This document shows, piece by piece, positions 34,159 to 60,920 of a stretch of DNA of 64,000 nt (position 1 is the stretch's first letter; each line of letters opens with the position of its first letter). The notes under the pieces were generated by a model. The model saw only the letters and a program-made list of their open reading frames with translations, was not told the origin of the DNA and made no database searches. Location: positions 193,179-257,178 of IMG/VR virus record IMGVR_UViG_3300011113_000805. One strand, 5' to 3'. A program made the position numbers and the translations under genes.

Positions 34159-34755
34159 TCACTCGAACTTAATCAATCCCAAACCGGTGAGAGCATCGAT
34201 GGTTGGTGTTCCTTTCTTTCTATAAACTTTGGAAAGTGGTGATCCCTGCCACGTTTCGCCAGGCTGTAGTTTCGCATTAGATGACCTTTGAATACAGTCA
34301 TCCTCTTCTATGTCAGGTGTGATTGTGCCTGGCTTTGAATCAAGCTGTTGATAATGAACATCCGAACGATTGTCATAGTAATACTGCCATACCCTTTTTG
34401 CATCAGGTGAAATAATTTTTCTGTCAGACATCAAGCCAGCAGGACCGGCCAGCTCCATAGCTATATCATAGAGGAGTGGACCCAGCCCGCGGATTCTTGT
34501 GTCAGAAGTGTTAACTTCGTATGCACCTAAGCAATTCCCGTAGTCTGGCATAGGACGAGCCATTGACAAGGTTCCAACTGAATTGTAGGCATCTTCGAAT
34601 TTCTCAGCTATAATACGATACCCGCCTAGTCCAAATTTTGTTTTTGTTACTTTAAAATGTATTCCAAGTTCTGCAGCTTTCTTCGGGGTTAGTGCTGCCT
34701 CGACAAGAAGGGTCTCACGGATGAGCTGTCGAAGCCTATGCTCAGTGATTCTCAT
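34159..34755 (-). CDS. Leader-bearing GNAT-like protein (family G)
   Basis: MRITEHRLRQLIRE; RGLGPLLYDIAME. Confidence 0.6.
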   Translation of the reverse strand: MRITEHRLRQLIRETLLVEAALTPKKAAELGIHFKVTKTKFGLGGYRIIAEKFEDAYNSVGTLSMARPMPDYGNCLGAYEVNTSDTRIRGLGPLLYDIAMELAGPAGLMSDRKIISPDAKRVWQYYYDNRSDVHYQQLDSKPGTITPDIEEDDCIQRSSNAKLQPGETWQGSPLSKVYRKKGTPTIDALTGLGLIKFE

Positions 34756-35849
34756 GATACACTCACAATTTCCATCCAGTCGGCCCAAATTGTTCCAAGA
34801 CCGATGACTTCCTTTTCACTTGAGAAGTCTTCAAATTCATCAAGGTCCACACCGTAGAAACCCTCAGCATCGAGGAATTTACCAGGATTATTCGCTTTGC
34901 TGGCAGCAAAGACTACGGCATACAAATTCTTTCCTCTCCTATGCCTATTACGTAATGAGAATTCCTTGGCAATCTCATATGAGGATGACCATGAGGAGGA
35001 AAATCTGTCTTCAAGTGGCTTAATCTCGAATTTCCCCTTCATCTCCTGCGTCTTGATGCTTGAATCAATTTTCGTGATATCAATCCCCATTCTTTCAAGA
35101 TCATCGATGTTGAGCAACATTCCTCGATAGTAGGTACCAGAAGGAGGTTCCATGAAGATGTCTGGGTAGAGGTTGTCCTTTATAAAGCTCATGGCAAGTT
35201 GTGATTGCTGGCGAGAAAGGGAACGTTTTCCTAAGAAGTGATTACGGATTGAACGAAGAAGGGCGTTCTCAATACTAGTGTTCTTCTCCATTGGAGGAGG
35301 ACGGGCATTCATCATCTGTCTTTGCGGTGAGAATGCATACTTGCCAAGTGGGGATTCAGGTGGTGCCTTGGGCTCATATGCAGCCTCATACTCGGCAGCT
35401 CTACGACTCTCATCATCAGCTTCGCGACTTCTCTTCTCCTTTGTGATGGAGTCCGCATCCTTCCGGAGACGGTTTCCCACCCTCTTGATTCCCCTGGAAG
35501 CTCTCAGGTTCTTCCTATCATCGTTGTTGATGAACCTGACAAGCTGTCGGTAGATCCTAGCTAGGAATTTCCCGCCCGGTGTCTCTTTAAGAACGCTGTC
35601 GATGACATCATCAGGAGACTCATTGGCACCGTAGTCGAACCTGAAACCGGGTACAGACTCCTCGATGATACCAGCAAACTCACCATATGTCGGCCATCGA
35701 CCGTTGATCACCTCGAAGCTGGATCGAATCGTGAACTTCCAATAGTCAAAGACGCCATGGATGGAGTCACCGTCAGAATAGTTGATCCTCGCCTCCGTTA
35801 GTAACGTCTCGCGGACGAGCTGTCGAAGCCTAGACTCAGTGATTCTCAT
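34752..35849 (-). CDS. Leader-bearing R-S-E ADP-ribosyltransferase
   Basis: YYRG / SSSWS / EKEV. Confidence 0.7.
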   Translation of the reverse strand: MRITESRLRQLVRETLLTEARINYSDGDSIHGVFDYWKFTIRSSFEVINGRWPTYGEFAGIIEESVPGFRFDYGANESPDDVIDSVLKETPGGKFLARIYRQLVRFINNDDRKNLRASRGIKRVGNRLRKDADSITKEKRSREADDESRRAAEYEAAYEPKAPPESPLGKYAFSPQRQMMNARPPPMEKNTSIENALLRSIRNHFLGKRSLSRQQSQLAMSFIKDNLYPDIFMEPPSGTYYRGMLLNIDDLERMGIDITKIDSSIKTQEMKGKFEIKPLEDRFSSSWSSSYEIAKEFSLRNRHRRGKNLYAVVFAASKANNPGKFLDAEGFYGVDLDEFEDFSSEKEVIGLGTIWADWMEIVSVS

Positions 35850-36325
35850 GGCAGCTCTCCCTTGTAATAATGACTTCCTTTATCTTCCGGAAGTTCACTG
35901 AGATCTCGTCTCTCACCCTCTCGGAAGCCAGCAGCAATAAAGGCTCTTTGCGACTCTTTGTTTATATCTGCAATCCAAACCCTTGCTGGTAAATGCGAAG
36001 GATCGTTAAAGAACTCACTGATTGCCTTTCTTGCATAGCCTTTGCCTCTTGCCGATGGATCGACGTAAATTGCCCCAGCACGCCAATAGCCTCTATCAAA
36101 TCTAGGAGTCATAAATCCTACAGGGTTACCGGAATCATCAAGTATTACGAAACGCGCTGCATCCTTTTCAGGCCCCTTTACGAGGTTCAATCCGGCAAAC
36201 TCAGGATGCCTGTCTGCATCATTAAGGAGACTGTTGAGACGTTCTATGCCTTGATTACCAAGTGATGCTGGTTTAGTCAGTTCCTCCCTAATAAGCTGTC
36301 GAAGGAGCGTTTCTATGATGTGCAT
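35846..36325 (-). CDS. Leader-bearing GNAT acetyltransferase
   Basis: IYVDPSARGKGYA (motif A), N..S..AF..AGF. Confidence 0.8.
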   Translation of the reverse strand: MHIIETLLRQLIREELTKPASLGNQGIERLNSLLNDADRHPEFAGLNLVKGPEKDAARFVILDDSGNPVGFMTPRFDRGYWRAGAIYVDPSARGKGYARKAISEFFNDPSHLPARVWIADINKESQRAFIAAGFREGERRDLSELPEDKGSHYYKGELP

Positions 36326-36326
36326 T

Positions 36327-36851
36327 CTAATCATTGTCCTTAAATGATAGACTCCTGGTAACACTTGGCATTGTACTTGTCGCTTTCCTGAAAGCATTCA
36401 TGTATTCTTTTGATGTTACATTGTGCCGTCTATTTTTGTAATCAGGGAAGCCTTCATCTGCCATCACCCGTTCCATATGAGACTCATCCTCACCGGCCTC
36501 CAAGCGAACCTTGTTAAGATGCTCAATTGTTCCAGTGTATGGACTATATCGACTACTAAATCCAACAAGACTCTTTGTTAGTGTTTGTGCAGGTTCCTGA
36601 ATCCACTCATCATCACGTTTAATGTATTGTTCATAAACTACCCGACCACCGTCATCAGCATTGTCATCCCGTTGCATCTCAATTACACGCGCAATCTGAC
36701 CTGCATCACCCGAGAATATGAATAAGTCTGAAAAGTGCGGTGTGAGAGTCTTTCGAGAACGCTTTAACTTAAAGTCGACTGGAACAACATCACCTTCATG
36801 GATGAGCTCTTCCCTAACAATGCGTCTTAAGATTTTTTCTGAAATTATCAT
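36327..36851 (-). CDS. Leader-bearing hypothetical protein
   Basis: ISEKILRRIVREELIHE. Confidence 0.65.
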   Translation of the reverse strand: MIISEKILRRIVREELIHEGDVVPVDFKLKRSRKTLTPHFSDLFIFSGDAGQIARVIEMQRDDNADDGGRVVYEQYIKRDDEWIQEPAQTLTKSLVGFSSRYSPYTGTIEHLNKVRLEAGEDESHMERVMADEGFPDYKNRRHNVTSKEYMNAFRKATSTMPSVTRSLSFKDND

Positions 36852-36884
36852 AGCTACCCTCCTCGAAAATTTATGTCACTATAT

Positions 36885-37514
36885 CTATGCATAAACGATT
36901 AGATCAAGCTCGAGCAACGCATCAAGGGTAGATGTTTGTCCATCAGCACGTTTGTAAGCTTTAGACAAAGACGACTCAGGCCACATTTCTTCGGTACCAT
37001 ACATGTCATCTGACCATATTCTTGCGCTGGATTGCACACAGTCGTCTTCTGGGTCTTTTGTCCGAGGTGCCTCTATATCATCGAGTTGTTGTGACCTGAT
37101 ATCAGGCCTTTTGGCATGATAATAATCCCAGACACGATGTGCGTTATGAGATACATTTACACGGTCCGAGGTAAGTGGGTCAGGATTGACAAGGTCAATC
37201 ATAAGGTCATACATAAGTGGACCAAGACCATCAATGTATACATAAGATCCATCAATTGACCAAGCACCTAAACATGGATCATTTTCCTTGTGACAAGATA
37301 AAAATCCGGCTGTGGTATTATCATTTCGATAATATGCTCGGATTTCAATATACTCTGCCTGACGTCTATCTTTGATCTTAAATTTTATGCCTTTTCTTTG
37401 TGCATCACTTGGACTTAAAGCAGCCTCGGTTAGAAGATAAAACTCACGAATGAGTTGACGCAGTTTACGCTCTGCTAGTTTGATGTTGCATCTCAAGTTA
37501 GGGATATTTCTCAT
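36885..37514 (-). CDS. Leader-bearing GNAT-like protein (family G)
   Basis: ERKLRQLIRE..LLTE; GLGPLMYDLM. Confidence 0.6.
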   Translation of the reverse strand: MRNIPNLRCNIKLAERKLRQLIREFYLLTEAALSPSDAQRKGIKFKIKDRRQAEYIEIRAYYRNDNTTAGFLSCHKENDPCLGAWSIDGSYVYIDGLGPLMYDLMIDLVNPDPLTSDRVNVSHNAHRVWDYYHAKRPDIRSQQLDDIEAPRTKDPEDDCVQSSARIWSDDMYGTEEMWPESSLSKAYKRADGQTSTLDALLELDLIVYA

Positions 37515-37664
37515 GACTATTTTCCCTTGCCTGTAGTTTGAATAGCTTTTGTTTCTCAAACGTGGGATCTGTCGCATCTGAAGTGTACTGAAGCTCTTGT
37601 GTTCTTTTCGCAAATCCCGCAAAGTCCTCAAGTAGAATTTCATGAATCAGATTTCTAATAGTGT

Positions 37665-38444
37665 TCATGTGATTCTCACAATATACATGTGATCTAGCTT
37701 GATAGATCCAATGCTAATAACTTCTTGCTCACGTGTATAAATGCCTCCTATGCCACCAATGCCATACAATGACTTAGCATCTAAAAACTTATAACGGTTA
37801 TCAGCAGGTGATGCACAAAGAATTACGTTATACAAATGCTTTGAACCTGCAGGCATAGACCAATATCCTCTATTTGCAAATTCGGTGGCAATTTTAGCGC
37901 TGATTGTCCATGAAGACACAGGGCGATTATCCTTATTTGTGATCACGGTATTGGTGTCATATCGTTCAGCAATTTTTCTCAAATCTTCTGTGGTCTCGAT
38001 TTCAAATGAATCTTTTGCTTCAAGAGTCTCGACATCAGAAAACAGATTAGGTGGAAGCATTTTTCTTAATGTGTCGATTGATAGCAAAACACCTCTATAG
38101 ACAACGTCTTCCTCAGGTTCCTTAAAAACGTCTGAGTATTTTCCTTTTTTCAAGAAATCAGAAACGATGTTGGCATATTCAGAATTTTTTGTAAATGATT
38201 GGCTGCTTTCCGGATCGGAGAAGTGCATATACAAAGACCAAAAGAGTTTTTGTTCGAAATCCGTATTTGGTTCTTGCGGAGGACGTGGTAGAGGTGCCGG
38301 GGGCCCTTGACGCTGTGGAGAAAAAGCGTACCTCCCTAGTGGCTCATCAGCTGTCATATTGGCAAGAGCCTTTTCGTCTGATTCACTCTCAGCCAATAGG
38401 ATCTGACGTATAATATGACGAATGTTTTTCTCACTCATCATCAT
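37665..38444 (-). CDS. Leader-bearing R-S-E ADP-ribosyltransferase
   Basis: VYRG / SSWT / EQEV. Confidence 0.7.
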   Translation of the reverse strand: MMMSEKNIRHIIRQILLAESESDEKALANMTADEPLGRYAFSPQRQGPPAPLPRPPQEPNTDFEQKLFWSLYMHFSDPESSQSFTKNSEYANIVSDFLKKGKYSDVFKEPEEDVVYRGVLLSIDTLRKMLPPNLFSDVETLEAKDSFEIETTEDLRKIAERYDTNTVITNKDNRPVSSWTISAKIATEFANRGYWSMPAGSKHLYNVILCASPADNRYKFLDAKSLYGIGGIGGIYTREQEVISIGSIKLDHMYIVRIT

Positions 38445-39198
38445 AAGACTCCTCCTTTATTCTGCAGGCCAAAACACTATTGACCTGAATTGTTCCTGTC
38501 CCAATGACTTCTTCTTCATAATCATAGGAACTAATCTCTCTAAGACGATAAAGTCCTTCACAGTCTATAAATTTTCCTGGATTGTTTTCGATTTTGGCAC
38601 AGAAAACAATGCAAATATCATCTTCAACTGCATTCTTTAGGGAAAATTTGACTGCTGTAGAAAGCGCTTTAGTCCAAGATGTTGTATATTTCCCACCCCT
38701 GTTTGTGATATCAATTTTCATGTTAAGCTTTTTCATTCTCTTGCCAATGGCATCAAAATCACCATCGTAATTCATGCCACCAATTGTATTGGGTATGTTG
38801 ACAAAAGGAATTTTTTCAATGTCAATATTTGGCAAAACGCTCTTTATGCTTGAAGAACCTTCGAAATGAATTCCACGGTAAATTGTAGCTGCAGGTGGCT
38901 CCGCAAAGATATCAGAATAGAGGCCGACTCTAATGAATTCCTTGATTTGATTAACAGTTTCCTGAGGTATTGGCAAATTATTTCGAAAATGAGAAACTAA
39001 CTGTAAACGTAAGCCCTCTTCATCTGTCGTGTTTTGCTCATAGGGAGGTAATGGTGATCGTGCCCAATGACGATTCGATGCATCGGCAAATGCATACTTT
39101 CCAAGTGGGGCATCAATAGGTGCCTCTGGTTTGTAAGAGTCAACAGCTTCGGTCAAAAGAATATGACGTATAAGCTGTAGGATTGTGGAATCATTCAT
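38431..39198 (-). CDS. Leader-bearing R-S-E ADP-ribosyltransferase
   Basis: IYRG / TSWT / EEEV. Confidence 0.7.
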   Translation of the reverse strand: MNDSTILQLIRHILLTEAVDSYKPEAPIDAPLGKYAFADASNRHWARSPLPPYEQNTTDEEGLRLQLVSHFRNNLPIPQETVNQIKEFIRVGLYSDIFAEPPAATIYRGIHFEGSSSIKSVLPNIDIEKIPFVNIPNTIGGMNYDGDFDAIGKRMKKLNMKIDITNRGGKYTTSWTKALSTAVKFSLKNAVEDDICIVFCAKIENNPGKFIDCEGLYRLREISSYDYEEEVIGTGTIQVNSVLACRIKEESYDDE

Positions 39199-39223
39199 CG
39201 CATGTTTCCTTTTAATGGCTTGT

Positions 39224-39964
39224 TCATGAACTAATAATTTTCTTCGTGACAAATATCTTGTTCACTCGAATCGTATCTACGCCAATAATTTCCCGTTCAT
39301 CCTTAAATGGTTCGAAATCTCGAAGCCAATACAGGGGTGACATGTCAATAAACTTTAAAGGGTTCTCTTCCACATCAGCACACAAAATAACCGCATAACC
39401 ACTTTCACCTTGCGCCAAATTTAGTTTGTCTAAGTTTCGAATGGCAAATTTCTCAGCTATCTGCTTGCTTTTTGACCATGAGGACGAATATCTGGCTTCT
39501 GTATTTGTAATGTCAATATTGACATCAATTTCTATTTCTTTGTGAGGTGGCATGTTAAGTATTTGAGATGACTCTACATCAGCCGGCATCCATTTCATCA
39601 ATGAATTGCTGCTCACGGCTATACCTCGATGTGCTATGACAAATATTGAAGGTTCCGCAAAAATATCAGAATAGAGCCCATTACGAATGAACTCCATAAT
39701 TTGATTAGCGTATTGATAAGGAAGTGCATGTTTTCCAACTTCTGTGTGCAATTGCAATGCCCCCAATAGCTTCAATTCTGCGGCATTGTTTCTTTCCCAT
39801 GGTGGTTTAGGTCTTTGCAGTCTTTGGTGTAATCCACTGGGCAGATGTGTACCAGCAAATGCATATTTCCCAAGAGGTGCATCAGCAGATTCCTCAGGAT
39901 CATAAGGCGTAGCAGATTCAGCCAAAAGGATTTGATGCACAAGAGAACGGAGGTACGTCTTCAT
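39224..39964 (-). CDS. Leader-bearing R-S-E ADP-ribosyltransferase
   Basis: MKTYLRSLVHQILLAE; HRG / SSWS / EREI. Confidence 0.7.
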   Translation of the reverse strand: MKTYLRSLVHQILLAESATPYDPEESADAPLGKYAFAGTHLPSGLHQRLQRPKPPWERNNAAELKLLGALQLHTEVGKHALPYQYANQIMEFIRNGLYSDIFAEPSIFVIAHRGIAVSSNSLMKWMPADVESSQILNMPPHKEIEIDVNIDITNTEARYSSSWSKSKQIAEKFAIRNLDKLNLAQGESGYAVILCADVEENPLKFIDMSPLYWLRDFEPFKDEREIIGVDTIRVNKIFVTKKIISS

Positions 39965-40669
39965 TTAGACGACCCTTCTTACCGTAACAGCACTTGCTCG
40001 AATAGGTCCCAGACCGATCACTTCACTCTCAGATCGAAATTCTTCTTCAAAGTCAGCATCGAAATTGAGAATATAAAGTGGTTCTGCATCAATAAATCTG
40101 CCAGGGTTATCTACCGATTGCGCCTCAAAAACGACTGAATACATAGGGCCCCATCGGGATTTATGCTTCTCGGAAAACACGGATGCATCAATGGATGAGA
40201 ATCTATCAGTCACACTTCTTATCTGCGACCAAGACGATGCAAACCTATCCTTAAGCGGGGCAATGAGATAATTGCCGGTTCCTTTCCATGTCTCACCAAC
40301 ATCTAATGATGGCAGGTCAGGAACCATGCTCAATAGTTCGGGTGTGATTAGGCGCATTCCACGATAACAAGTTCCTTCAAAAGGATGAAAGACATCTTTG
40401 TAGATGCCTTTCTTAACAAAGTCAACGATTGCTTCACCATAAGCTTTCGTAAGAGGTCTCATTCCAAAAAAATGATCACGAATTGCACGTAAAAATGCAC
40501 TTTCCTTAGGATTGTTTTTCTCTAAAGGAGGTGGTTTCTGAATGCCTTGTCTCTGGGGTGAGAATGCATATTTGTCAAGAAGGGATCCCGCAGGAGCAGC
40601 TTCAATGTCACTCTCTAGAGACTCACATAAGATCTCCTTTATCAAAAGCCTTAAATCTCTTTCATTCAT
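39965..40669 (-). CDS. Leader-bearing R-S-E ADP-ribosyltransferase
   Basis: CYRG / SSWS / ESEV. Confidence 0.7.
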   Translation of the reverse strand: MNERDLRLLIKEILCESLESDIEAAPAGSLLDKYAFSPQRQGIQKPPPLEKNNPKESAFLRAIRDHFFGMRPLTKAYGEAIVDFVKKGIYKDVFHPFEGTCYRGMRLITPELLSMVPDLPSLDVGETWKGTGNYLIAPLKDRFASSWSQIRSVTDRFSSIDASVFSEKHKSRWGPMYSVVFEAQSVDNPGRFIDAEPLYILNFDADFEEEFRSESEVIGLGPIRASAVTVRRVV

Positions 40670-40756
40670 TATTGAACTATGCATATGCAACAACCCTTAG
40701 GCTTTACTATTTAGGTGGTGGCATGCAAAGCATTTAAAGATTGTGCCGAATGTAAA

Positions 40757-41730: not shown

Positions 41731-41904
41731 TTATAAGGGGCGAAGCTCGTGAAGTGGAATGTATAGGATCTTCCCGTCGACGAGAGTCGGGAATCGTGTG
41801 GTCGACCATGATGGGATGGGTCCCACGATCATGCCGATCTGTGGTGGTCCGGAAGAGTAGTATCCGCCGTGATCGATGATCTCGGCGAGGTCACCGGGCT
41901 TCAC
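41731..41904 (-). CDS. KPGDL-family small protein (57 aa)
   Basis: Hand translation: VKPGDLAEII...LVDG. Confidence 0.55.
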   Translation of the reverse strand: MKPGDLAEIIDHGGYYSSGPPQIGMIVGPIPSWSTTRFPTLVDGKILYIPLHELRPL

Positions 41905-42100
41905 TGATCACCTCCAACCGGTCCTCAGGCATGCGCCAGTGGGGACTCCCATTGACCATCAACCAGAAGTACCTCACATTTAGGTCGTTGAAGTCGTACG
42001 GTTCACGCGCCTCTCTGAGGATCAGGCCCACAAGTCCATCATAGCGATCGGGCTCATCATCCTCATCGGGAATCAGGCGGACGAGATCACCCGGCTTCAT
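41891..42100 (-). CDS. KPGDLV (KOW/SH3-like) small protein
   Basis: MKPGDLVRL. Confidence 0.65.
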   Translation of the reverse strand: MKPGDLVRLIPDEDDEPDRYDGLVGLILREAREPYDFNDLNVRYFWLMVNGSPHWRMPEDRLEVISEAR

Positions 42101-42371
42101 CGATCACCTCCACATTAGCCTCGTCCACCCAGACCCAGCGAGGTAAACCGTCGATCAGGAGGAGGGCAGCGTCCACGGACGGCTCGTTGGCGGCGGGAAG
42201 GGCGGAGGCGGTGGCTCGTAGACGGGCACTGGGGAAGTCGGCGGCGGAGTCCAAGATGAGGCAGATCCGACCTGGGCTCTTGTCCCAGCCTCTGCCATCA
42301 TACCAGAAGAGCTGGGATTTGATTTGAAGCAGGCCGCCCTTGTGGGCTTGAAGGGTCTCAAGAAGGGTCAT
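42087..42371 (-). CDS. Paralog family H protein
   Basis: AHKGGLL...RGWD...RICLILD...LLIDGLPRW. Confidence 0.7.
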   Translation of the reverse strand: MTLLETLQAHKGGLLQIKSQLFWYDGRGWDKSPGRICLILDSAADFPSARLRATASALPAANEPSVDAALLLIDGLPRWVWVDEANVEVIDEAG

Positions 42372-42762
42372 GTCCCATCCCTGCGAGGCACCCCTTCAAC
42401 CAAGAAAGCCATTCCGTTTCGCACCCGATGTGATCCGCTGGATTGATGATCGATGGGAATCCGGCCGACTGAAGGGTGGCCAGCATCTCCTCACGGACAC
42501 CCTCGAGGCCTGTGGTGGAGGTGATGATGACAGGAGTCCCGGAATACCACTCTTCAGCGACCCAGCGTGCCCACATCCTTCCGTCCTGATGAGGCATATC
42601 GTGATCGAGAAGGATCCCATCGAACTGTGTGCGGCCTTCGAGGATGAATGTTTCAGCAAACTCCGGGTCGCAGGTGATGATCCACCGGTGCTTCTCCCGG
42701 TCCAGCATTTGGGTGAACTCGTCATAGCGGGATGGACAATCATCGATGATAAGAAAACGCAT
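42358..42762 (-). CDS. Stand-alone receiver-like domain protein
   Basis: FLIIDD...ILLDHDMP..DG...PVIITS. Confidence 0.7.
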   Translation of the reverse strand: MRFLIIDDCPSRYDEFTQMLDREKHRWIITCDPEFAETFILEGRTQFDGILLDHDMPHQDGRMWARWVAEEWYSGTPVIITSTTGLEGVREEMLATLQSAGFPSIINPADHIGCETEWLSWLKGCLAGMGHDPS

Positions 42763-42814
42763 GTTAGGTCCTTTGTGTTTTACTATACCACATGGGCGGA
42801 TGGGTTGCATAGGT

Positions 42815-43048
42815 TCACGAGATCACCTCCGAGAAATCCTCGAGCTCTGCGTCGGTTCGCTCATCAATCAACCCATCCCGAAGGATCGACCAGAGGCGAA
42901 CATGTGATCCTCCATGAAGTCCCAACTGGATCGGCGTGACCATCCTGTGATCGAGGATGAGAAACACCTTTCCGTCCAACGATGAAAGACGCTTGTTCCA
43001 TCGGCGAAGCTGGCCCTTCTCGATCACTTTCCCTCCATCATTACACAC
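42815..43048 (-). CDS. Hypothetical protein
   Basis: IEKGQLRRW. Confidence 0.55.
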   Translation of the reverse strand: MCNDGGKVIEKGQLRRWNKRLSSLDGKVFLILDHRMVTPIQLGLHGGSHVRLWSILRDGLIDERTDAELEDFSEVIS

Positions 43049-43481
43049 AACTTGGGCAGTAATGCCACTCGAGCTAATCAGCTCCGTGTTCGCAGTGCGT
43101 TCCTTTCTTTATCCATCCCGACTGGGAGATCTAGGGGTGGTTTGATGCGGGCATCGCAAGAGTTGCATTGGATCTCGACCAAGATTCGCTTTTTGTTGTC
43201 TTCACGAACCGCATAGATTTTCACTTTCCCTCCATCTCAGCCTTCCGCTCCAGGATCCTCTCCCGCTTCTTCTTGAGTGACCGGATGTTGGAGCGGCACT
43301 CCTTCACATTGAGGAGGGCGCACCTCAGTCGGGATTCCTCCTCCCTCAAGTCGGCCTCGCAGACCTTCAGCATCGTGTTGATCTGCCAGGCATCGAGCGG
43401 GACCTTCCTCGAGGGAATTGTGGAATCGGAGGCTTGTTCCTAACGCCAGTTCTCGATGGTCTCCTGGTCAAAGTTGGGCAT
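43041..43481 (-). pseudogene. Two adjacent decayed genes (coiled-coil gene with in-frame TAG; Zn-ribbon gene with frameshift and TAG)
   Basis: Hand translation of 43221..43481 and 43041..43224. Confidence 0.5.
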
Positions 43482-43795
43482 TACTCCTCCAACCCGAGTA
43501 CCCGCATTGCCCGGCGCTTTCCACGAAGCCAGAACTCATTCGTCTCCTCCCAGTCGCCGCCCTCGTTGGTGTCATCGTTCTCGACGTACCAGCGGAGGCA
43601 CTCATTGATCTTCTTGAGCTCCTTGTCCCGCTCGTTCAGGAGGACATTGAGTCGACCGATCTCGGCGTAAAGTGAGGCCCATGCGGATTGTTCGGGCATC
43701 GGGATCGAATCGGGCAGGGGATTGATGCCCCAGTAAGTGTGATTCGGGCAGCTGACATTGTTTCCGGCGATTCCGCAACTGGGACAGGTGGTCAT
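43481..43795 (-). CDS. Hypothetical protein with Cys motif and coiled coil
   Basis: GGAG RBS; CPSC. Confidence 0.6.
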   Translation of the reverse strand: MTTCPSCGIAGNNVSCPNHTYWGINPLPDSIPMPEQSAWASLYAEIGRLNVLLNERDKELKKINECLRWYVENDDTNEGGDWEETNEFWLRGKRRAMRVLGLEE

Positions 43796-43804
43796 GGGTT
43801 CTCC

Positions 43805-44092
43805 TTAGTATCCAAAGATTCCAAAGATCAGATTCAATTGGCCAATCGAGCAGTCCTTATCGTGACCCTGATTGGTGTACCCCGAACAGCAGAAGTATGG
43901 ATCGTAGATTCGACCGTAACCCCCATCACGATTGTACTCGATGAAGGAAGGCATGTCACCAACGAGGACCTCGATCCTCTTAAGGAGTTCACGACACTGG
44001 GAATCGGTGAGGTCATCAATCTTCACGTTGTAGAACTCGGTGGTCATTCTTCCTCCTTTCCGTTGTCCAGGATTTCCAGGTCCTTCTCCCAT
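43805..44092 (-). CDS. Hypothetical protein
   Basis: ORF track; likely start MTTEF. Confidence 0.55.
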   Translation of the reverse strand: MGEGPGNPGQRKGGRMTTEFYNVKIDDLTDSQCRELLKRIEVLVGDMPSFIEYNRDGGYGRIYDPYFCCSGYTNQGHDKDCSIGQLNLIFGIFGY

Positions 44093-44304
44093 CCCCAGAA
44101 CGTGAAGTGCTCAAGCTCACCAGGTTCGAGGTAGTACTTTTCTACAGTGAGAAGCTCAATCTCGATCGATCCATGATTTTCCGGTGAAAGTGGACCGTCA
44201 TCCTCCCAGAGGCTGATGTCTCGAACGATGCCGGTCCAGCGGTCTCCCCTCTTGTAGAAGTAAGAACCCTTCTTCGGGGCGACAGTGTCTCCGACCTTGA
44301 TCAT
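44044..44304 (-). CDS. KOW/SH3-like small protein
   Basis: MIKVGDTV. Confidence 0.6.
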   Translation of the reverse strand: MIKVGDTVAPKKGSYFYKRGDRWTGIVRDISLWEDDGPLSPENHGSIEIELLTVEKYYLEPGELEHFTFWGWEKDLEILDNGKEEE

Positions 44305-44507
44305 TCCTCCTCCTTTACGACCTTGATCTCATTCTTGGGAACATTCAGGACCAGGCGCATGTACTTCTGTGCATCCTCGAGGTCGTAGAACATGGCGCGG
44401 GCGGTCGGTCCGTCCTCATCCTCGGTGATGATCCAGTAGACATCGGAGTCATCGCAGTTGTACACATCGACCGGGGCGCACTCGATGTAGGGATTCGTCA
44501 TCCTCAC
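44301..44507 (-). CDS. Hypothetical protein
   Basis: Coupled ORF. Confidence 0.55.
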   Translation of the reverse strand: MRMTNPYIECAPVDVYNCDDSDVYWIITEDEDGPTARAMFYDLEDAQKYMRLVLNVPKNEIKVVKEEE

Positions 44508-44701
44508 TCCAATTTCAGGGAGGCGTTAGGAAGGTGATGGACAAGGGTGTCCTTGGGGAAATGATGTAGGTTGCCGGACTGGAGGTTCACGGCGGTGTCC
44601 TCGGCATCGACCTTCATGAATGGGCCACCAAAGTTGAACACCTCACCAACCTCCAGGTCCACGAAACGGGTCTCACCGGTTTCCTTGCGATTGATCTTCA
44701 T
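44504..44701 (-). CDS. Hypothetical protein (paralog of 28081..28323)
   Basis: Motif similarity. Confidence 0.6.
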   Translation of the reverse strand: MKINRKETGETRFVDLEVGEVFNFGGPFMKVDAEDTAVNLQSGNLHHFPKDTLVHHLPNASLKLE

Positions 44702-47034
44702 TCATTCTCCTTTGTGTTATCATACCCACCGTCATCGGGATTTACAACCTGCAGGTTCTCCTTCGCCCAGGGCTGGAGTTCCCCGTCGATCAGGACCCAC
44801 CAGTCGCACCAGGAGTTGATGGGATGGCCATCCTCAAGGGAAACAGGTTCCATGATAATGCCATAGAGGCCTAGAATGCCTGCGTCGATCTCATAGCCTT
44901 CCTTAGCATTTACCGTGACAACAAGATCACCTGGTTTCATCAAAGACATTGATCACATCAATTAAGGTTATTGGAAAATAGGGATGACTTAAGACATAAT
45001 TCGGAAACTTGATTTTGATATCAAAGAATTCTATTGTGCCGCCGCGCTGATTACAAGAGATAACAATTCCAAATTGACCTTGAACATCATATGCTCTATC
45101 TGGACCGGGTACAAGACGAACAAGATCTCCAACATTTACCTTCATAGGGTTTCACCTTTAGCAAGGAGAGTAATAATCAGATACCGGTTTTCCTTGAACA
45201 TCTAACAACCAATCTGTTGGTGTCCACATGAGTTTGTCATGCATAAAAATTTGGGACCATTTGACCATTTGAAGACCGGATCCAGTAAAATATCGCTGTA
45301 CTTCAATGACCAGCATGGATTCTTGAGCATTACATGAATGCATCATTATTGAACCATCTTCAATGTCCAATTCATCATAGAGTGGTGTGCCCTTAACTAG
45401 AGTTACTAGGTCACATAGCTCCATCAATAATCTCCAAATGACGGTCATAAATGTCATATGACACACCATTAAACATTACAGTTGATCCCATTACATCTAT
45501 GCCTGGCGATATAAATGACTTCCAGCCACCGATAACGATTCCAATGGTATCTCGTTCTGGACTATCTGTTAGTAGTCGAAACTTATGCGGTCTATACCAG
45601 AATTTGTAATCCTCATTGGGGGCTGGCCTGAACCTAACAAGAGTCCCAACGGGAAGATGGCCTTTGATGAACCTATAGAGCCAATAATAGATTTCATGAA
45701 AAATTTTCATTGATAGTCGCTAAGTATTCCTCATCAACCCAGCCAATTTGCCCATTATGCAGGACTTGCACCATTTCATTGACCGCGTCCCACCCTTTAA
45801 GTAGAATACCAATCTCGCCGCGCTCCCAGCTCTTCTTTTGCTTAGCATACAATCCTGTCGGGATTCGATCATAAATGTAGACAGAAGTGATAGGAACCCT
45901 ATAGGTGATGTTCCACTTGCGGATTGTAACAAGATCGCCGGGTTTCATGTGATTGCCTTCGAATCTTTGCAAAAAGGCATAGACAAAATTCAATTTTCAT
46001 TGGCACGCTATGAAAGCGTAAGGCTCCATTCACATTTTATGCAATCACTTCGAAATTTTCATAAACTAATAGCACACCTAAACAACCATTAACACTAAGC
46101 CTTCCATGTCTTGTTAACTCAGGCTTGGCTGGGAAATAGAAAAATCCACGACCTGTGATACGCATACCATTGGGCATCACAATTCCATCCGGATAATCAT
46201 GATGATCCCAATCAATATCCATAAGAATTGCGAAATCATCTTTGACTATTCCCATATGTTCTAAATCATCAACAATAACTCTGACAAGATCGCCGGGTTT
46301 CATAGTGGTTCATGCTCGTCACTGTATACCCAATGAATAGCACCATTCACAAGAATTTGAGACCGGTCTCTCTTCGTAAATCCGCCAGATATTGAGCCCA
46401 TGAAAACTGCGACAGTTCCGATTGGAACCCAATTCTTGTGAAAGGAAGGTTCGAATTGACCCAATAAAACCTTGTCTTGGTTTTTGTAGGATACTAATTT
46501 GATAAGATCACCAGGTTTCATGAAACCACTCTAGAGCTGATGGGCTGATATCAAAAATTTCTCCGTTAATAACACAAGAAATAAGACCAAGTTCGGAATT
46601 AAACATATCACTTGAACGGCCTAATACAAGACAGATTGTTCCTGATTTTGTGCCTCGCACACCTAATGGATAACGAAGTGTAACCAGGTCACCAGCTCTT
46701 ACAGGCTGTGTGCAACCATATTGGGATTCAGTGGTCCAAAAGATAATCGGCGCATCGCTCATGTGATCACCTTAACACGACAATCAAATTTCCTAACTTT
46801 CCACCTGGGAATGCAATCAATCAAATTATTGTCAACTAGAACTGTGTAATAACGTCTTAACGACGAACCAGTGATTTTGATTATAAGTCCTGGAAACCAA
46901 TCTTGTTCTTCTGTAACCCAAACCCAGCAAATATCACCAGGGCTGATGTCTGTTTCATGATTGATTACATTCAAACTAAATGTGCTCGAGATGGTATTCA
47001 GATACCCAGATAATCTCACCTGTAGTAAAATCAA
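44698..47034 (-). other. Run of overlapping small KPGDLV/KOW-SH3-like genes (44698, 44927, 45158, 45411, 45694, 46037, 46300, 46508, 46759)
   Basis: Repeated (K/V/S)(P/V)GDL(V/I) motifs and a C-terminal hydrophobic-NG/DG turn. Confidence 0.6.
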
Positions 47035-48820: not shown

Positions 48821-49555
48821 TCAACGTTGATATACTTCATCAAAGATACACGCCAACTGTTTTCCCATCAATCTAGGCATTCTATCAATAGGAAATCCCA
48901 TTTTGCTTAATGCGACGCGGGCTTCATTGTGCCTTGCTTCAAGTTGGGACAAACCGTTAGGTTCAGTCTTAATTTTGTATTTGTAATTAAGCCATTGTCG
49001 ATCTTGCAATTTGCAGTCATCTTCGATTGGAGGGGTTTGAGGATCCTCATAATTGTCAAACTCTAGTGCCTCTATTTCACCACTCTTTGCGCGATTATTA
49101 TAGTTCTTCCAAATTTTGGCAGCTGAGTCACTCGTTTCGCTTCTATCTGATGTGAGTCCGCCATAGTACCACATTGCAGCTTCATATGCAGCAGGTCCCA
49201 TTCCTGTTCCTGGCCACGCAGCTGAGAACTCAACATAGTAAGAACCTAAACACTCAGCATTCCAACTCAATTTATTCACTTTTCTAACAAAAACACCTGA
49301 TTTGACAATGGGATTACCTAATTCTAAAGACTCCTCAATAGCAAAAGGTATTGCCTCTGTGGCCCTGGCATATCTCACACTTTCGATTAGCAGATTTGGA
49401 TCATAGATTGCAACCCCCTCCAGCTCGTTTTTATGGCCGCGATGCATGATATCGCAAATTGCATATCCCATACTAACAGCACGTGAAATCGGCGATGTTG
49501 ATTCAGTCAGCATCATGTGAAGTATTGTTTCTCGAATAAATTCCCTTAGGATCAT
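48821..49555 (-). CDS. Leader-bearing GNAT-like protein (family G)
   Basis: MILREFIRE..LTE; GTGMGPAAYE, LTSDR..TS..A.KIW. Confidence 0.6.
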   Translation of the reverse strand: MILREFIRETILHMMLTESTSPISRAVSMGYAICDIMHRGHKNELEGVAIYDPNLLIESVRYARATEAIPFAIEESLELGNPIVKSGVFVRKVNKLSWNAECLGSYYVEFSAAWPGTGMGPAAYEAAMWYYGGLTSDRSETSDSAAKIWKNYNNRAKSGEIEALEFDNYEDPQTPPIEDDCKLQDRQWLNYKYKIKTEPNGLSQLEARHNEARVALSKMGFPIDRMPRLMGKQLACIFDEVYQR

Positions 49556-54166: not shown

Positions 54167-54196
54167 CCATTTCATTCCTTGCAAGATTAAGATCAT

Positions 54197-55425: not shown

Positions 55426-55992
55426 TCATAATGAAGCCGGCTTCCACCATGATGGTTCAGGTCCGTGTCGCCACTTCGCAAATCTCACCTTAGATCCCAG
55501 GTAGTAATTACGATAACTTTGGACAGGATCACCTGGCACTTTGTATTCTTCAGGCATTGCCAAGGCAAATGATGTAAGACCACTACCTGTTGATGCCCAT
55601 GCCGGTGGCTGTGTGTCAATCGCCCATTGAGTGACAGATTCAGATTTGATAATCTTTCCATATCGTGCAGTATATTCGTGACAAAGTCCTAATCCGTGCT
55701 TTGCTAACCAAGCATAATTCTCAGGTGTTTGTCGGGCCCAAACAGAGCAAGGATGATTTACATGTGTCATACTATAGGGTGGAACAAGATCAGGATCTGG
55801 AATATTGATAGCTAGCCACTCCTTTAGCTTCTTGCCGCGAAGCTCAACAGGCGGTGACAGCATCTTTTGCCAGCCTACCCAATGAACTGAGCATAAAACT
55901 TGGCAAGTTTCAAGTGACATTTTGCAAATATGCTTATCACATAGATCTTTTGCAGCTAGAATCGGATCCAGGTTGGTCACAAAGATATTCAT
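55426..55992 (-). CDS. Pyrimidine-dimer DNA glycosylase-like (DenV superfamily) protein
   Basis: MNIF..DP..AA..LCDKH..KM.LE..Q.L; NHPCSVW; EYT.RYGK. Confidence 0.75.
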   Translation of the reverse strand: MNIFVTNLDPILAAKDLCDKHICKMSLETCQVLCSVHWVGWQKMLSPPVELRGKKLKEWLAINIPDPDLVPPYSMTHVNHPCSVWARQTPENYAWLAKHGLGLCHEYTARYGKIIKSESVTQWAIDTQPPAWASTGSGLTSFALAMPEEYKVPGDPVQSYRNYYLGSKVRFAKWRHGPEPSWWKPASL

Positions 55993-56049
55993 TCATTCCT
56001 CTATGAGTATGTGATATCGAATTGTATTCATCCGATAGAATAATTTCAA

Positions 56050-56961: not shown

Positions 56962-57007
56962 TTGAACCTCCTGAAAAATTATACCACAGGTGAGTGCCTA
57001 TTTACAA

Positions 57008-57763
57008 ATGAGGTGTAAATTGACGGCAAAAAGAAATCCTGCATATCATAAGGGACTCTCAAAATCGACACAGGACAAGCGTCAGCATCAATTCAACAAG
57101 CAAGCAAAAAAGCACTGGGATGATCCATCGGCTTACAAGAAGGCGCCAGGTGATTCTAAAAAGACAAAGCCCTCAAAGTGGAACGAGAAGTTCAAGAAGA
57201 TGTATGGTGAATCGGATGGTATCGATGAGATGCTTGGAAATCCTCCAGGTGGAAATTTTACAGGAGAGAGTGAAATGAGAGAAGATGATTGCTACGAGTG
57301 TGGAATGTCAGAGGCGGAATTCGAAGAGTCTGACTTCACCTGGGCTGCCGCAAATGCTGCAGTGGCTGGAAAGAAAACGTTTACATTTGGCGGTGAGGAA
57401 CATCCTGTCAAGATGTCTGTAGGAAGGGCGAAGGAGATCCTGGGTGAGCTTGATGAGCTACGTGAGGCCATCGCCCTGGTCTCTGAAATGCTGGATGAGG
57501 ATGAGGCACTCGAAGAGGCACTGTCGGCAAAGACGAGAAAGGCTCTAAAGAACAAGGCTGAGAAGGCAAGGGCTCCAATGGGTGCCTTGACAACCGTCTA
57601 TAATAAGGGCCTAGCCGCCTGGAGAACCGGACACAGGCCAGGAGCGAGTCAGCACGCCTGGGCAATGGCAAGAGTAAATAGTTTCCTTGCCGGCGGTCCA
57701 GCCCGAAAGGTGGATGCCACCCAGTGGAAGCAAGTTCAGAAGCACAGGAAAAAGAAGAAGTAG
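57008..57763 (+). CDS. DUF5824-like protein with basic ends and acidic core (start uncertain)
   Basis: VYNKGLAAWRTGHRPGASQHAWAMARVNSF. Confidence 0.6.
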   Translation: MRCKLTAKRNPAYHKGLSKSTQDKRQHQFNKQAKKHWDDPSAYKKAPGDSKKTKPSKWNEKFKKMYGESDGIDEMLGNPPGGNFTGESEMREDDCYECGMSEAEFEESDFTWAAANAAVAGKKTFTFGGEEHPVKMSVGRAKEILGELDELREAIALVSEMLDEDEALEEALSAKTRKALKNKAEKARAPMGALTTVYNKGLAAWRTGHRPGASQHAWAMARVNSFLAGGPARKVDATQWKQVQKHRKKKK

Positions 57764-57793
57764 TTCCTTGCAATTTCTGTAAACAAATCTAGC

Positions 57794-58438
57794 TTAGATC
57801 ATGTTAAAGTCACCAAATGTATACGAGCTTAGTTTAAACTTGCTATAGCGAACTAATCCAAAACTTTCAAGTTTATCGAGAGCAGGTGTGCCTCCTCCCT
57901 TTCTACGATAAGCTCTAGACAGTGAGCTTCCCCACCAATTTTCTTCATTATAGTCCATCGATGACTCTTGCCTGCAGTTATCGTCAAGTGCAGGTGTCTT
58001 TTCATTTTTCATATTATCAAGCAGCACAGATTCGACATCTGGGCGAGACCTCAGATAGAAGTCCCAGATTCGCAGGGCATCCGGCTTGACATCAAATCTG
58101 TCACATGTCAGCGGATCTGGCGACACAAGGTCCATCATCAAGTCGTACACAAGCGGTCCTAATCCTTTCAATTTTGGACTCATATTTGCCCATGTTACCG
58201 ACCAAGCAGCTGAGCATGGACCGTCACTTTCTGAATCCCTTCTTGCCGAAAATTCACCAGCTATTTCTGGAGGCATGTCTTCACTAATAGACATAACTCG
58301 TATAGCAATTTGTCCTTCTTCTTTATTGTTAACAATAAATTGCACACCTTTTTCGTCGGCCATTTCAGGTGTCCAAGCGGCCTCTCGAAGGATCTCACTG
58401 CGAACAAGGGATCTTAATCTAGATTCAGTAATTCTCAT
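57794..58438 (-). CDS. Leader-bearing GNAT-like protein (family G)
   Basis: MRITESRLRSLVRSEILRE; KGLGPLVYDLM. Confidence 0.6.
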   Translation of the reverse strand: MRITESRLRSLVRSEILREAAWTPEMADEKGVQFIVNNKEEGQIAIRVMSISEDMPPEIAGEFSARRDSESDGPCSAAWSVTWANMSPKLKGLGPLVYDLMMDLVSPDPLTCDRFDVKPDALRIWDFYLRSRPDVESVLLDNMKNEKTPALDDNCRQESSMDYNEENWWGSSLSRAYRRKGGGTPALDKLESFGLVRYSKFKLSSYTFGDFNMI

Positions 58439-58447
58439 TGCAGTGTC

Positions 58448-59293
58448 TCAAGAAAGATTGTTCATGAATTCTACGTTATTGACAATTGACTCATGCCTCT
58501 TACGAAGCTTTGATGCAATTGTCTGAAGTTCCACTGTCCACTGATTCAATAGTTTCCCCATTCTGCGATCATCTAGCTCACCAGATACCTCATCATCACA
58601 CTGATTAATGAGAGCCTCAATTTTGTTCCATGGAACACTCATGAAATTTTTAGCAGCGACCTTAAGGTCAGAATGGATAAAAACATATCCTGCGTCAGTT
58701 CCTGGCGTGAGCATTGTTCTCATCTCGCTTGGTTCATCCGAGAATCGTGATCCTTTGCGACTTCCTTGAGCGCGAAATGTCAAGGCGCCACCAGGATCGA
58801 TCCTCACAGGACGACCTGATGGATTAATGATAACATTCCCAGGACCAACAACATCCCAGTTGGCAAGAAAAATATCCACATAGACACCGGCAGACATCGC
58901 TCGAGCAAGTTCTGTAGGTTTTATTGTGAAAGATTTTCCTCCATCAACTCCTAAGGTGGCTAATCCAACTCTCTTCTTGGTCCTGTCATAGACAAGTTCA
59001 ATCTTTCCTGGCAGATCAACGTCGGGGTAGAGCGAGTAAATCTTATATGCTAGCCACTCAACGAGGATCTGAAGTGATGGGTCAATGCCAGGATCGTAGA
59101 GTTCTGTATCCGAGAACTTGAGATAGAACTTGTCACCTCCAATATAGCAGGTGTTCATCACGTGTGTTGAGCCACGTGTCATACATACACCTTGAAGATC
59201 TTCATAATCGACTTCATTTAGAAGTGACTCATAAAGTAGCTCATTTATAACATGACGAAGAAAATCTGTGGCTTTCGTCATGGATCGATTCAC
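58448..59293 (-). CDS. Leader-bearing kinase-like protein (HipA/PI3-4K-like)
   Basis: FYLKF, VEWLA, DIFLANWD...GN, RIDPG. Confidence 0.55.
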   Translation of the reverse strand: MNRSMTKATDFLRHVINELLYESLLNEVDYEDLQGVCMTRGSTHVMNTCYIGGDKFYLKFSDTELYDPGIDPSLQILVEWLAYKIYSLYPDVDLPGKIELVYDRTKKRVGLATLGVDGGKSFTIKPTELARAMSAGVYVDIFLANWDVVGPGNVIINPSGRPVRIDPGGALTFRAQGSRKGSRFSDEPSEMRTMLTPGTDAGYVFIHSDLKVAAKNFMSVPWNKIEALINQCDDEVSGELDDRRMGKLLNQWTVELQTIASKLRKRHESIVNNVEFMNNLS

Positions 59294-59814
59294 CTGATAT
59301 CAGGATGCATTTCAGCAAGTTCTGCCAGAGTTAGCCTAACAGCATGGTCAGGTGTATTGGTAGTTTCACGCTTTGCAAGGTAAAGCTCCAAAACTGTCTC
59401 AGCTCCAAGTGCTTCAATATACTTTGTGAGCTCGCCATCTTGCATGTATGATCCTGAACGATAGCCTAGTTGAGCTTCTTTAAGAACTTCTTTGCGAATC
59501 ATGTTTCTCAAGTTGCGATTCGTGATTCTCATTTTACCTTTCTCCTCTGTGATTTCTATTTTAAGTTTACCATCACCACGAATGACCCTGTGCCATTTTC
59601 GTGCAGGTATATTGTATGTATGCCCTTCAACGAGTTCTAGTGGCAATCCCACATCCATTTGCAAACACCACCCACCAGATTCAATAACTCTTACTTTACG
59701 ATATCTTAGATCTTGGTGCCAAACAAGTTCATCATTAGGAACAGTTGGTAAAAATTCCCTAATGAGTGTATTTCGATTAATTCTTATTTGTGTATAAGGT
59801 TTTGAACTTAACAT
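59290..59814 (-). CDS. Cupin-like domain plus internal leader-bearing C-terminal part
   Basis: VWHQD...IP..KWHRVI; MRITNRNLRNMIRKE at 59532. Confidence 0.6.
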   Translation of the reverse strand: MLSSKPYTQIRINRNTLIREFLPTVPNDELVWHQDLRYRKVRVIESGGWCLQMDVGLPLELVEGHTYNIPARKWHRVIRGDGKLKIEITEEKGKMRITNRNLRNMIRKEVLKEAQLGYRSGSYMQDGELTKYIEALGAETVLELYLAKRETTNTPDHAVRLTLAELAEMHPDIR

Positions 59815-59909
59815 AATCTATTGCTCACTGATAATATGTATGACAGTGATCAGCCACTGTGAGCTTTTCCAGAAGGAGTGTTTATGAACAAGAGATCGAA
59901 GAAGAGGTA

Positions 59910-60920
59910 TCACATTAGTTTATACCTAAGATGCTTAGGTACTTTGTCCCAATATTTGTGATTGAAACCGTAGATCTCATATTCCACCTGTAAATCATCT
60001 GGAAGGGAGGTGATGCCTGTGCCGGTGAGGTAGAGACTGCCACCTACCTTGAGCCCTTTAGGAAGAGAGATGATAATAGGATTGTAGGAGAGAACGAGAC
60101 TACCCTTCACGTGAAGCCCTTCAGGAAGGGAGGCAATAGAAGTCTTCTCAAGGTCTAGATCACAATCCGCTACTCTTTGGTCTTTTGGCAAATTCTTAAG
60201 TCGTTCTATTAATTCTGTGTTAAGTAAAGATGTAATATCTCTGGACAACCTAATCATAACTTCACTAACCCGAATTGTGCCGGCAGCAACAACTTCATTT
60301 TCATCCTTAAAATCATCAATGCCTTCCAATTCATAAAGTCCCTCACAGTCAATCCATTTTCCAGGACTGTCTTCTACTGCGGCACAGAGAATAATAGCAA
60401 AATCAGAAGAATCATCGCCAGCAAACCCCTTAGCCTTTTTAAGGCTCTTTGTCCAAGATGCTGTGTATCTTTCATTTATGTTTGTCAAGTCAAGCTGTGT
60501 TTTGAAACTAGCAAAATCTTCACCTGTCTCTATAATCTGTCTCCAGGCATCATTAAATGCGCTTCCCTTTGGTAGAAATTTCTTCGCAACGCTCTCAGAA
60601 GAGATGGCTAACCCCCGATAGAGGGTGCCTGGTGGCGGTGCCCTGAAGATATCGGCATAGAGCCCCTGATCGATAAAGTCTAAAACTTGATCAGTGATCT
60701 CTTTCGAGAGTGGCCTATTACCATTAAAATGAGAGAATAATGCTCTATACAGCGCATTCTCAACCTGAGTATCTTCCTCCGGAGGCGGTTTGGGTGAACC
60801 TAGCCGAACGTTAGCAAAGGCATACTTTCCCAAAGGGGCATCGGCCGGGGCTTCTGGCTTATAGGCACCATTAGACTCGAGAAGAACTTGATGAATGAGT
60901 GAGCGGAGAAGGTGAGTCAT
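59910..60920 (-). CDS. Leader-bearing R-S-E ADP-ribosyltransferase + 3 LRR-like repeats
   Basis: LYRG / ASWT / ENEV; I.SLP.GL.V.G.L.L. Confidence 0.7.
   Translation of the reverse strand: MTHLLRSLIHQVLLESNGAYKPEAPADAPLGKYAFANVRLGSPKPPPEEDTQVENALYRALFSHFNGNRPLSKEITDQVLDFIDQGLYADIFRAPPPGTLYRGLAISSESVAKKFLPKGSAFNDAWRQIIETGEDFASFKTQLDLTNINERYTASWTKSLKKAKGFAGDDSSDFAIILCAAVEDSPGKWIDCEGLYELEGIDDFKDENEVVAAGTIRVSEVMIRLSRDITSLLNTELIERLKNLPKDQRVADCDLDLEKTSIASLPEGLHVKGSLVLSYNPIIISLPKGLKVGGSLYLTGTGITSLPDDLQVEYEIYGFNHKYWDKVPKHLRYKLM

Follow-up and report, generated by a model that had tools for sequence, protein, structure and literature searches.

Organization of the Predicted ADP-Ribosyltransferase Genes

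The DNA analyzed here, referred to as the window, is the last 64 kb (64,000 nucleotides, positions 193,179 to 257,178) of the 257,178-bp virus record IMGVR_UViG_3300011113_000805 of IMG/VR, which has an estimated completeness of 76%. It contains six paralogous genes for proteins of the ADP-ribosyltransferase (ART) type with the catalytic residues arginine, serine and glutamate (R-S-E), each starting with a short N-terminal leader. Positions refer to the window unless the record is mentioned. The initial annotation of this DNA had proposed six such paralogs, recognized by the motifs (P/L)L(G/D)(K/R)YAF, (Y/H)RG, SW(S/T) and ExE(V/I). A six-frame motif scan of the whole window bears this out, as the four motifs occur in the same order in exactly six open reading frames (ORFs), all on the minus strand. 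The number six is correct for the window but not for the genome: the full record holds ten copies, of which the four extra ones (record positions 180360-186171) come shortly before the start of the window. The six window copies, which align end to end with ~34% identity, are the following:

34752-35849, minus strand: ART paralog 1, 365 aa, laid out as leader (residues 1-19, 35793-35849), extra domain of ~145 residues and ART domain; Arg242 at 35124-35126, Ser286 at 34992-34994, ExE from Glu345 at 34815-34817
37665-38444, minus strand: ART paralog 2, first of the tandem four, 259 aa; leader 38388-38444; Arg117, Ser178, ExE from Glu239
38431-39198, minus strand: ART paralog 3, 255 aa; leader 39148-39198; Arg108, Ser174, ExE from Glu228
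39224-39964, minus strand: ART paralog 4, 246 aa; leader 39917-39964; HRG replaces YRG; Arg113, Ser162, ExE from Glu223
39965-40669, minus strand: ART paralog 5, the modelled copy, 234 aa; leader 40622-40669; Arg103 at 40361-40363, Ser146 at 40232-40234, Glu214 at 40028-40030, Glu216 two codons on
59910-60920, minus strand: ART paralog 6, 336 aa, laid out as leader, ART domain and C-terminal leucine-rich-repeat (LRR)-like domain; Arg102, Ser155, ExE from Glu207
60876-60920, minus strand: leader of ART paralog 6, 15 residues, ending LLE
59913-60188, minus strand: repeats of ART paralog 6, period of ~23 residues, SLPxGLxVxGxLxL type, with the conserved tail YW..VP.HL..KL

Four of the six genes are arranged head-to-tail between 37.7 and 40.7 kb, as initially annotated, and their stop and start codons overlap or abut. 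Two ORFs had been drawn from an upstream TTG (38431-39252 and 39965-40693); the position of the leader in the other copies makes the ATG codons at 39198 and 40669 the likely starts. A broken-gene reading of in-frame stops was rejected, as these stem from matches that were extended past the ends of the genes; each of the six ORFs is intact.

Predicted Fold and Catalytic Residues

The ART assignment, for which the initial annotation had suggested structure prediction as a check, is supported by modelling. An AlphaFold2 (AF2) model of 39968-40669, built on a 50-sequence alignment, reached a pLDDT of 91 and a pTM of 0.82 and matched the ART superfamily almost exclusively. It supersedes a first AF2 model, restricted to the C-terminal domain of paralog 1 and based on a six-sequence alignment (pLDDT 62, weak Foldseek matches). 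The ART fold is a split beta-sheet of two three-stranded units with an NAD+ cleft. In two structure searches with the 50-sequence model, the top-50 lists consisted essentially of ARTs. A Foldseek-independent comparison with 48,161 PDB representatives gave the best scores to TreX (8.0), PltA (7.5), pertussis S1 (7.4) and Vis (6.9), and further PDB neighbours are KptA, Scabin, LT, Arr, HopU1, XopAI, Tre1, C3, iota-like toxins, VIP2, ExoS, SpvB and PARPs. Among the Swiss-Prot AFDB models, DraT, Vis and Lart1 were matched, and the Atlas structures matched belong to PF01129 and PF03496 clusters. The BFVD matches, from E 3e-6, comprise phage ARTs, minor-capsid/portal fusions, several Bacillus phage G proteins and T4-type ADP-ribosylases or ModB.

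Eight residues (Y90, R103, G104, S146, W147, A183, Y199 and E216) are invariant in the 50 homologues, whose mean column identity is 22%, and E214 is conserved in at least 90% of them. The R-S-E signature of the initial annotation is thus upheld, its arginine, serine and second glutamate being invariant, and E-x-E is present in all ten paralogs. In the model, R103 is located in the first core strand (100-108), S146 in the next core strand (144-148), and E214-x-E216 where a later strand (216-220) begins. From alignment ranges and offsets, R103 can be equated with R7 of cholera toxin and LT and with R9 of pertussis S1. An ART fold with an intact canonical R-S-E site is well supported by this model, and fold and site together suggest that the proteins are enzymatically active.

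The N-Terminal Leader

The leader is present on ten of ten copies, in line with the initial annotation, which had described it on all paralogs. It is amphipathic, 15-19 residues long and follows the pattern L(R)xL(I/V)(R/H)xxLL(x)E, and the six window leaders end in LL(x)E or LCE. Metagenomic ART homologues bear the same leader. Within ten residues after its core, (L/I)-x-E is found in 164 of 193 leader-bearing homologues, compared with an expectation of 6% derived from the remaining sequence of these proteins; since these homologues are related, this number reflects conservation and is not an independent count. The conservation of the leader concerns the protein and not the DNA. Since synonymous codons vary freely, a conserved nucleotide element was rejected.

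A hidden Markov model of the leader detects 17 genes in the record (i-E at most 4e-4), always directly after a methionine, compared with 1.9 for the best reversed-sequence control. These are the ten ARTs, six genes of a second family (family B) and one gene of a family labelled C. At least 11 more genes begin with a looser form, M(R)ITE..LRxhhRxE, for which the internal match rate is 0.003 per 30 residues. In related phage contigs, neighbouring genes match the profile in the leader part only. Looser leaders (MRITE..LRxxVRxE and the like) were also observed in the window on small genes with unrelated and unannotated bodies (5022-9783, 32534-32953, 36327-36851, 48821-49555 and 58448-59281).

Genes for a major capsid protein of the Gp23 type (PF07068, E 1.6e-63) and a prohead protease of the gp21 type (Peptidase_S77, PF03420, E 2.9e-15) are present in the record, which makes the phage a distant member of the T4 superfamily. 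In T4, gp21 cuts after L/I-x-E (PMC9026906), and the internal proteins possess N-terminal propeptides of 10-19 residues, which target them to the prohead core and are then removed by gp21 (PMC9026906, PMC3012670). T4 Alt loses a short N-terminal propeptide in the same way and is injected with the DNA (PMC9026906). According to the T4 record, Alt begins with MELITE, while many of the leaders described here begin with MRITE. The phage's own capsid protein contains ILKE followed by Ala near residue 62, comparable to the propeptide site of T4 gp23. Because of its L-x-E end, the T4 precedent, the gp21-type protease and the sharing of the tag, the leader is best read as a capsid-targeting propeptide that would be removed by the protease. 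By analogy with T4, packaging through the leader is likely. The initial annotation had contrasted the leader on all copies with T4, where Alt is the only packaged ART. This contrast is real and stronger than stated, in view of the L/I-x-E end, the gp21-type protease and the presence of the tag on many unrelated genes.

Two small ORFs between the protease and scaffold genes (record 87616-87924 and 87928-88443) contain leader-like segments (..LLRRIVLEE.. and ..LKSLVKECLLE..). Their sequences make them candidate prohead-core proteins using the same tag.

Diversification of the Paralogs

The segment between the Arg and Ser motifs is 41-64 residues long in the ten copies and shows a mean pairwise identity of 20%, compared with 37-59% for every other segment. 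The high variability initially noted for this region is thus substantiated. Half of the copies (paralog 6 and the four outside the window) additionally carry a C-terminal LRR-like domain, and the same repeat module ends the proteins of family B. LRR_4, LRR_1 and DUF5649 of Pfam gave below-cut-off matches, all on a family-B copy, and the NCBIfam models SlrP and XopAC matched the repeat module weakly (E 3e-4, far below cut-off). For some close relatives, LRR_1/LRR_4 matches exist in precomputed form.

In a maximum-likelihood tree of 57 sequences, the ten copies do not form one clade, and nine label changes are needed. Every copy in the window is joined to a metagenomic orthologue of its own with 99-100% support. 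Some of the orthologues are nearly identical and possibly represent this phage species sampled elsewhere. This pairing indicates that the duplications are old and that each lineage has been kept. A recent amplification of the tandem four was consequently rejected. Old and retained lineages fit distinct targets rather than dosage.

Sequence Relatives of the Family

Metagenomes contain plenty of homologues, none of which has a name or a Pfam domain. When 1.8 billion representatives were searched exhaustively with a profile, thousands of matches were obtained, in which those to the catalytic domain and to the repeat module are mixed. A profile search of PDB sequences gave no match for the ART proteins. 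With two family members as queries, tblastn against GenBank phages detected no match to the ART domain, the sole match being to the repeat module, in Edwardsiella phage Edno5, and megablast of the locus against phages gave no match. No relative of the ART family was found on plasmids or in a pattern scan of 185,579 species genomes. The family is apparently restricted to viruses.

Other Leader-Bearing Families

The genes next to the ART paralogs include further carriers of the leader:

60917-62182, minus strand: family B, copy 1, 421 aa; same leader, N-terminal domain of ~180 residues, same repeat module
62179-63297, minus strand: family B, copy 2, 372 aa
35846-36397, minus strand: GNAT acetyltransferase with a leader-like N-terminus (Pfam Acetyltransf_1, E 1e-6), between ART paralogs 1 and 2
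34159-34755, minus strand: third leader-bearing family; other copies at 7261-7881, 36885-37643 and 57794-58438

Family B has at least six genes (the two in the window, and others at L001:3409-4731, L001:8172-9191 and record 3-2050), each consisting of leader, ~180-residue domain, repeats and tail. The domain contains an invariant YHG(T/S), GxGxY and several more invariant residues; in the window, the motifs are YHGT and GKGLY. In an Atlas feature search, ART-PolyVal (PF18760) accounted for 32 of the 100 nearest clusters, and AcrIF11-type ART clusters were found too. The structural neighbours of a family-B look-alike include RES and PARP clusters. Searches of family B against Pfam, including PF18760, and against PDB by phmmer and by profile were without match. 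As a lead only, the family is possibly an H-Y-type ART, of which the H...GxGxY arrangement is reminiscent. The third family, with four copies, appears GNAT-like according to language-model (Atlas) features and predicted structure.

Genomic Setting and Environmental Distribution

The capsid protein has its nearest relatives in Microcystis phage Mel-JY01 (35% identity), the Flavobacterium 'immuto' phages (45%), two uncultured huge phages (484 and 595 kb) and Xanthomonas phage XacN1. DNA nearly identical to the tandem array is present in more than 15 independent metagenomes of lakes, rivers, reservoirs and aquaculture, so this uncultured giant phage is widespread in fresh water. The whole array is spanned by DNA contigs from independent lakes. 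Two freshwater-sediment RNA libraries contain contigs over much of the array, with 95-99% identity, leaving the stretch 36.8-37.5 kb uncovered. As DNA carry-over is possible, this is weak evidence of transcription. One freshwater-sediment RNA-library contig joins 39418 to 39963, by which the first ~180 codons of ART paralog 4 are lost. This junction may reflect a strain with a deletion, or two paralogs wrongly joined in the assembly.

The window is a hyperplastic region crowded with gene families. One paralog family of at least 12 copies (~160 residues, starting M..YTLIDP.TG.QT.LSE.ELTRNLQ...HIGIITHRDLV) is located at 10776-11291, 16422-19172, 24141-25336 and 31226-34092. Small tandem paralogs of two further families, with the start MKPGDLVR and the motif W.GRGWD.ETDRIC.LLD, lie at 41891-46762 and also at 11360-13112 and 42087-42371. 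The G+C content across the window (1-64000), a single contig, ranges from 40% (36-41 kb and 46-48 kb) up to 60% (14-24 kb). ORFs consisting nearly entirely of Leu-Gly repeats (LLGLLLG...) at 29487-30937, in a high-GC stretch, may be spurious or may encode a low-complexity protein. The record begins and stops within copies of the leader/LRR gene families (record 3-824 and window 63294-64000). These repeats are probably where the assembly broke, and further leader/LRR copies may exist in the quarter of the genome that is missing.

The two main head genes have particularities of their own. The prohead protease gene is a single ORF of 573 codons (record 88367-90085), in which two Pfam-matching parts flank an insert of ~1 kb. 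The insert displays intein/LAGLIDADG-like features (a Cys at its start, LAEGH and an HN-type end before Cys), and the gene is probably interrupted by an intein. The capsid protein (record 82667-84592) has 641 residues and a Pfam match split into positions 3-83 and 126-356. The split corresponds to extra Gly/Ser/Thr-rich sequence, across which only the protein of Microcystis phage Mel-JY01 aligns. The record was also searched for a macrodomain, an ADP-ribosylhydrolase and an NAPRTase, without a match.

Proposed Role of the ART Proteins and Alternative Explanations

We consider it moderately likely that these proteins are mono-ADP-ribosyltransferases of the R-S-E type which are packaged in the head, trimmed by the protease and injected, with diversified targets. 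The course of events that we infer, from packaging, cleavage and injection to activity, arginine acceptor and targets, would be as follows. Each ART would be made with the amphipathic leader as a propeptide of 15-20 residues, which the gp21-type prohead protease of the phage would cut off after its terminal L-x-E. The mature enzymes would ride in the head and enter the host with the DNA. There, they would carry out NAD+-dependent ADP-ribosylation of host macromolecules, most likely of arginines in host proteins, ahead of any phage gene expression. Each copy probably recognizes a different target, because the insert is the part that differs most among ten old paralogs and because five of them add an LRR-like domain; the outcome would be host takeover or counter-defence.

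Several observations weigh against this proposal, at the level of family assignment as well as of packaging, acceptor and catalysis. A Pfam search with the six window proteins was without match, the best hit being SidE_mART with E 0.15 on a single copy, and PHROGs and NCBIfam gave no relevant match for them. When the family was compared by hhalign with the T4 enzymes, whose sequences were taken from the T4 record, no significant similarity was obtained for ModA (E 0.0096, 4% probability) or ModB (E 0.095), and the alignment with Alt (E 0.32) lay on an irrelevant stretch; the probability did not exceed 4% for any of the three. The Arg motif (YRG/WRG) is nevertheless paired in the alignments with both ModA and ModB, and in that with ModA the Ser motif and ExE are paired too. 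The likeness to Alt, ModA and ModB drawn in the initial annotation therefore applies to fold and catalytic signature, while membership of the Alt/Mod sequence family is not supported.

With regard to packaging, the ART genes are ~100 kb away from the head-morphogenesis module. A single occurrence of the T4 late-promoter motif TATAAATA in the window equals chance and gives no enrichment, and scans for sigma-70 promoters and terminators remained at chance level. Such a location and the missing late-promoter signal would suit active ARTs that are not packaged and are expressed after infection like T4 ModA/ModB, their N-terminal helix serving oligomerization, binding of a common phage or host partner, localization or stability control. 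According to the T4 annotation, two of the three T4 ARTs are indeed unpackaged. However, the length and position of the leader match those of the T4 targeting propeptide, its L/I-x-E end is far above chance, and a gp21-type protease is encoded. The tag is moreover common to many unrelated enzymes, as is the T4 targeting sequence among internal proteins. Active ARTs that are not packaged are an unlikely explanation.

The proteins might also use the ART fold on a substrate other than protein arginine, such as nucleic acids (like Scabin, pierisin, DarT and Tpt1) or small molecules, or might mainly hydrolyze NAD+ and so blunt NAD-dependent defences. Some close structural neighbours do have other acceptors, namely Tpt1/KptA (RNA 2'-phosphate), pertussis S1 (cysteine), Scabin (DNA guanine) and Arr (rifampicin). 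On the other hand, cholera-toxin-like protein ARTs are characterized by the R / S / E-x-E triad that is invariant here, whereas catalysis by Tpt1 and DarT depends on other residues. Those neighbours that match over the full domain together with its N-terminal helices (Vis, HopU1, XopAI, Tre1, C3 and iota-like) are protein ARTs, and the LRR-like domains also suggest protein partners. A non-arginine substrate is on balance rather improbable. Arginine is a plausible acceptor in view of ExE and of the nearest folds (Vis, DraT, Lart1, LT and TreX), the nearest full-domain structural neighbours being arginine-specific enzymes.

It is very improbable that the proteins are inactive ART-fold proteins retained as structural or DNA-condensing internal head proteins: most T4 internal proteins are non-enzymatic and the middle motif is S-W-S/T and not the classical S-T-S, with the first Ser kept and Thr changed to Trp, but across long-separate paralogs of ~30% identity, neither Arg nor Ser nor the catalytic Glu varies and the first Glu hardly does, which is hard to explain without catalysis.

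Returning to packaged and injected ARTs, a broader hypothesis can be put forward, albeit tentatively. The leader could be a general cleavable 'address label' that loads several dozen enzymes, about a tenth of the genes, into the head for injection, with the LRR modules and hypervariable inserts aiming individual effectors at different targets in the host. The cargo as proposed would comprise the ten R-S-E ARTs, the copies of family B (at least six) as second ART-like family, GNAT-like acetyltransferases and others. Such a system would be the phage counterpart of a bacterial type III effector repertoire.

Head-delivered phage ARTs as such are already known, T4 Alt being established. What is new is an unannotated R-S-E family with ten old paralogs in one genome, each joined to a leader of the internal-protein type. 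The LRR-like modules on half of the copies and the same tag on many other enzymes are new as well. If packaged, these proteins would constitute a battery of protein-modifying enzymes delivered at DNA entry, compared with the single Alt of T4. The capsid-targeting principle of T4 would then cover not just a few small inhibitors but an extensive set of enzymes, and the leader with L-x-E would provide a simple sequence rule to predict injected proteins in uncultured T4-type giant phages. Annotation of environmental phages misses this ART family because Pfam, PHROGs and NCBIfam are blind to it, and the wide occurrence of the phage in lakes, rivers and reservoirs makes the system ecologically relevant. 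The ten long-separated paralogs with their hypervariable insert also form a natural series for studying the evolution of ART target specificity.

Comparison with Known Systems

A close parallel is T4 Alt, likewise an R-S-E-type ART of a T4-type phage, with a short N-terminal propeptide removed by gp21. Alt has 682 residues, compared with 234-365 in the window copies, and T4 has one Alt instead of ten diverged copies. The leader is also longer here and common to many other proteins, and sequence homology with Alt is not detectable. T4 ModA and ModB resemble our proteins in being small phage ARTs (~200 residues) with R, S and E-x-E, but they are synthesized after infection and have no targeting leader.

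For the internal proteins of T-even phages, it is established that diverse cargo bears one conserved targeting sequence (PMC3012670). IPI, IPII and IPIII of T4 have a propeptide of 10-19 residues, which ends in L/I-x-E and is common to unrelated, fast-evolving cargo (PMC9026906, PMC3012670), and the leader described here is like it in these respects. In our phage, the putative cargo is predicted to be enzymatic (ARTs, GNAT-like proteins) and far more numerous, with 17 genes for the strict leader and at least 11 for looser ones.

ARTs are found in more than 40% of jumbo phages, with at least 10 in Bacillus phage G (PMC9503650). From comparative genomics, it has been argued that ARTs are often delivered from myovirus heads, based on MuF/portal fusions, polyvalent proteins and synteny (Iyer et al. 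2022, PMC9503650). The present family is another case of ART expansion in giant phages, and its BFVD neighbours include minor-capsid/portal fusions and phage G proteins. In contrast to the MuF-ART and portal fusions, delivery here would make use of a cleavable address tag, and unlike in other multi-ART jumbo phages, all ten copies belong to one family.

The best structural matches are provided by bacterial R-S-E toxins and effectors (Vis, cholera toxin/LT, pertussis S1, TreX, Tre1, HopU1, XopAI, DraT and Lart1), which have the equivalent Arg and an ExE before the fifth strand. The phage proteins share only 9-20% identity with them and differ by S-W-S/T and by a conserved N-terminal strap, PLGKYAF...PPxExNT. 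They are also without immunity or B-subunit partners. The type III effectors with LRRs (SlrP/IpaH/YopM type and XopAC) similarly combine an enzyme with an LPX-like LRR module as a possible target binder, the NCBIfam matches to them being weak and far below cut-off. In the phage proteins, the enzyme precedes the LRR module, and the context is that of a phage genome.

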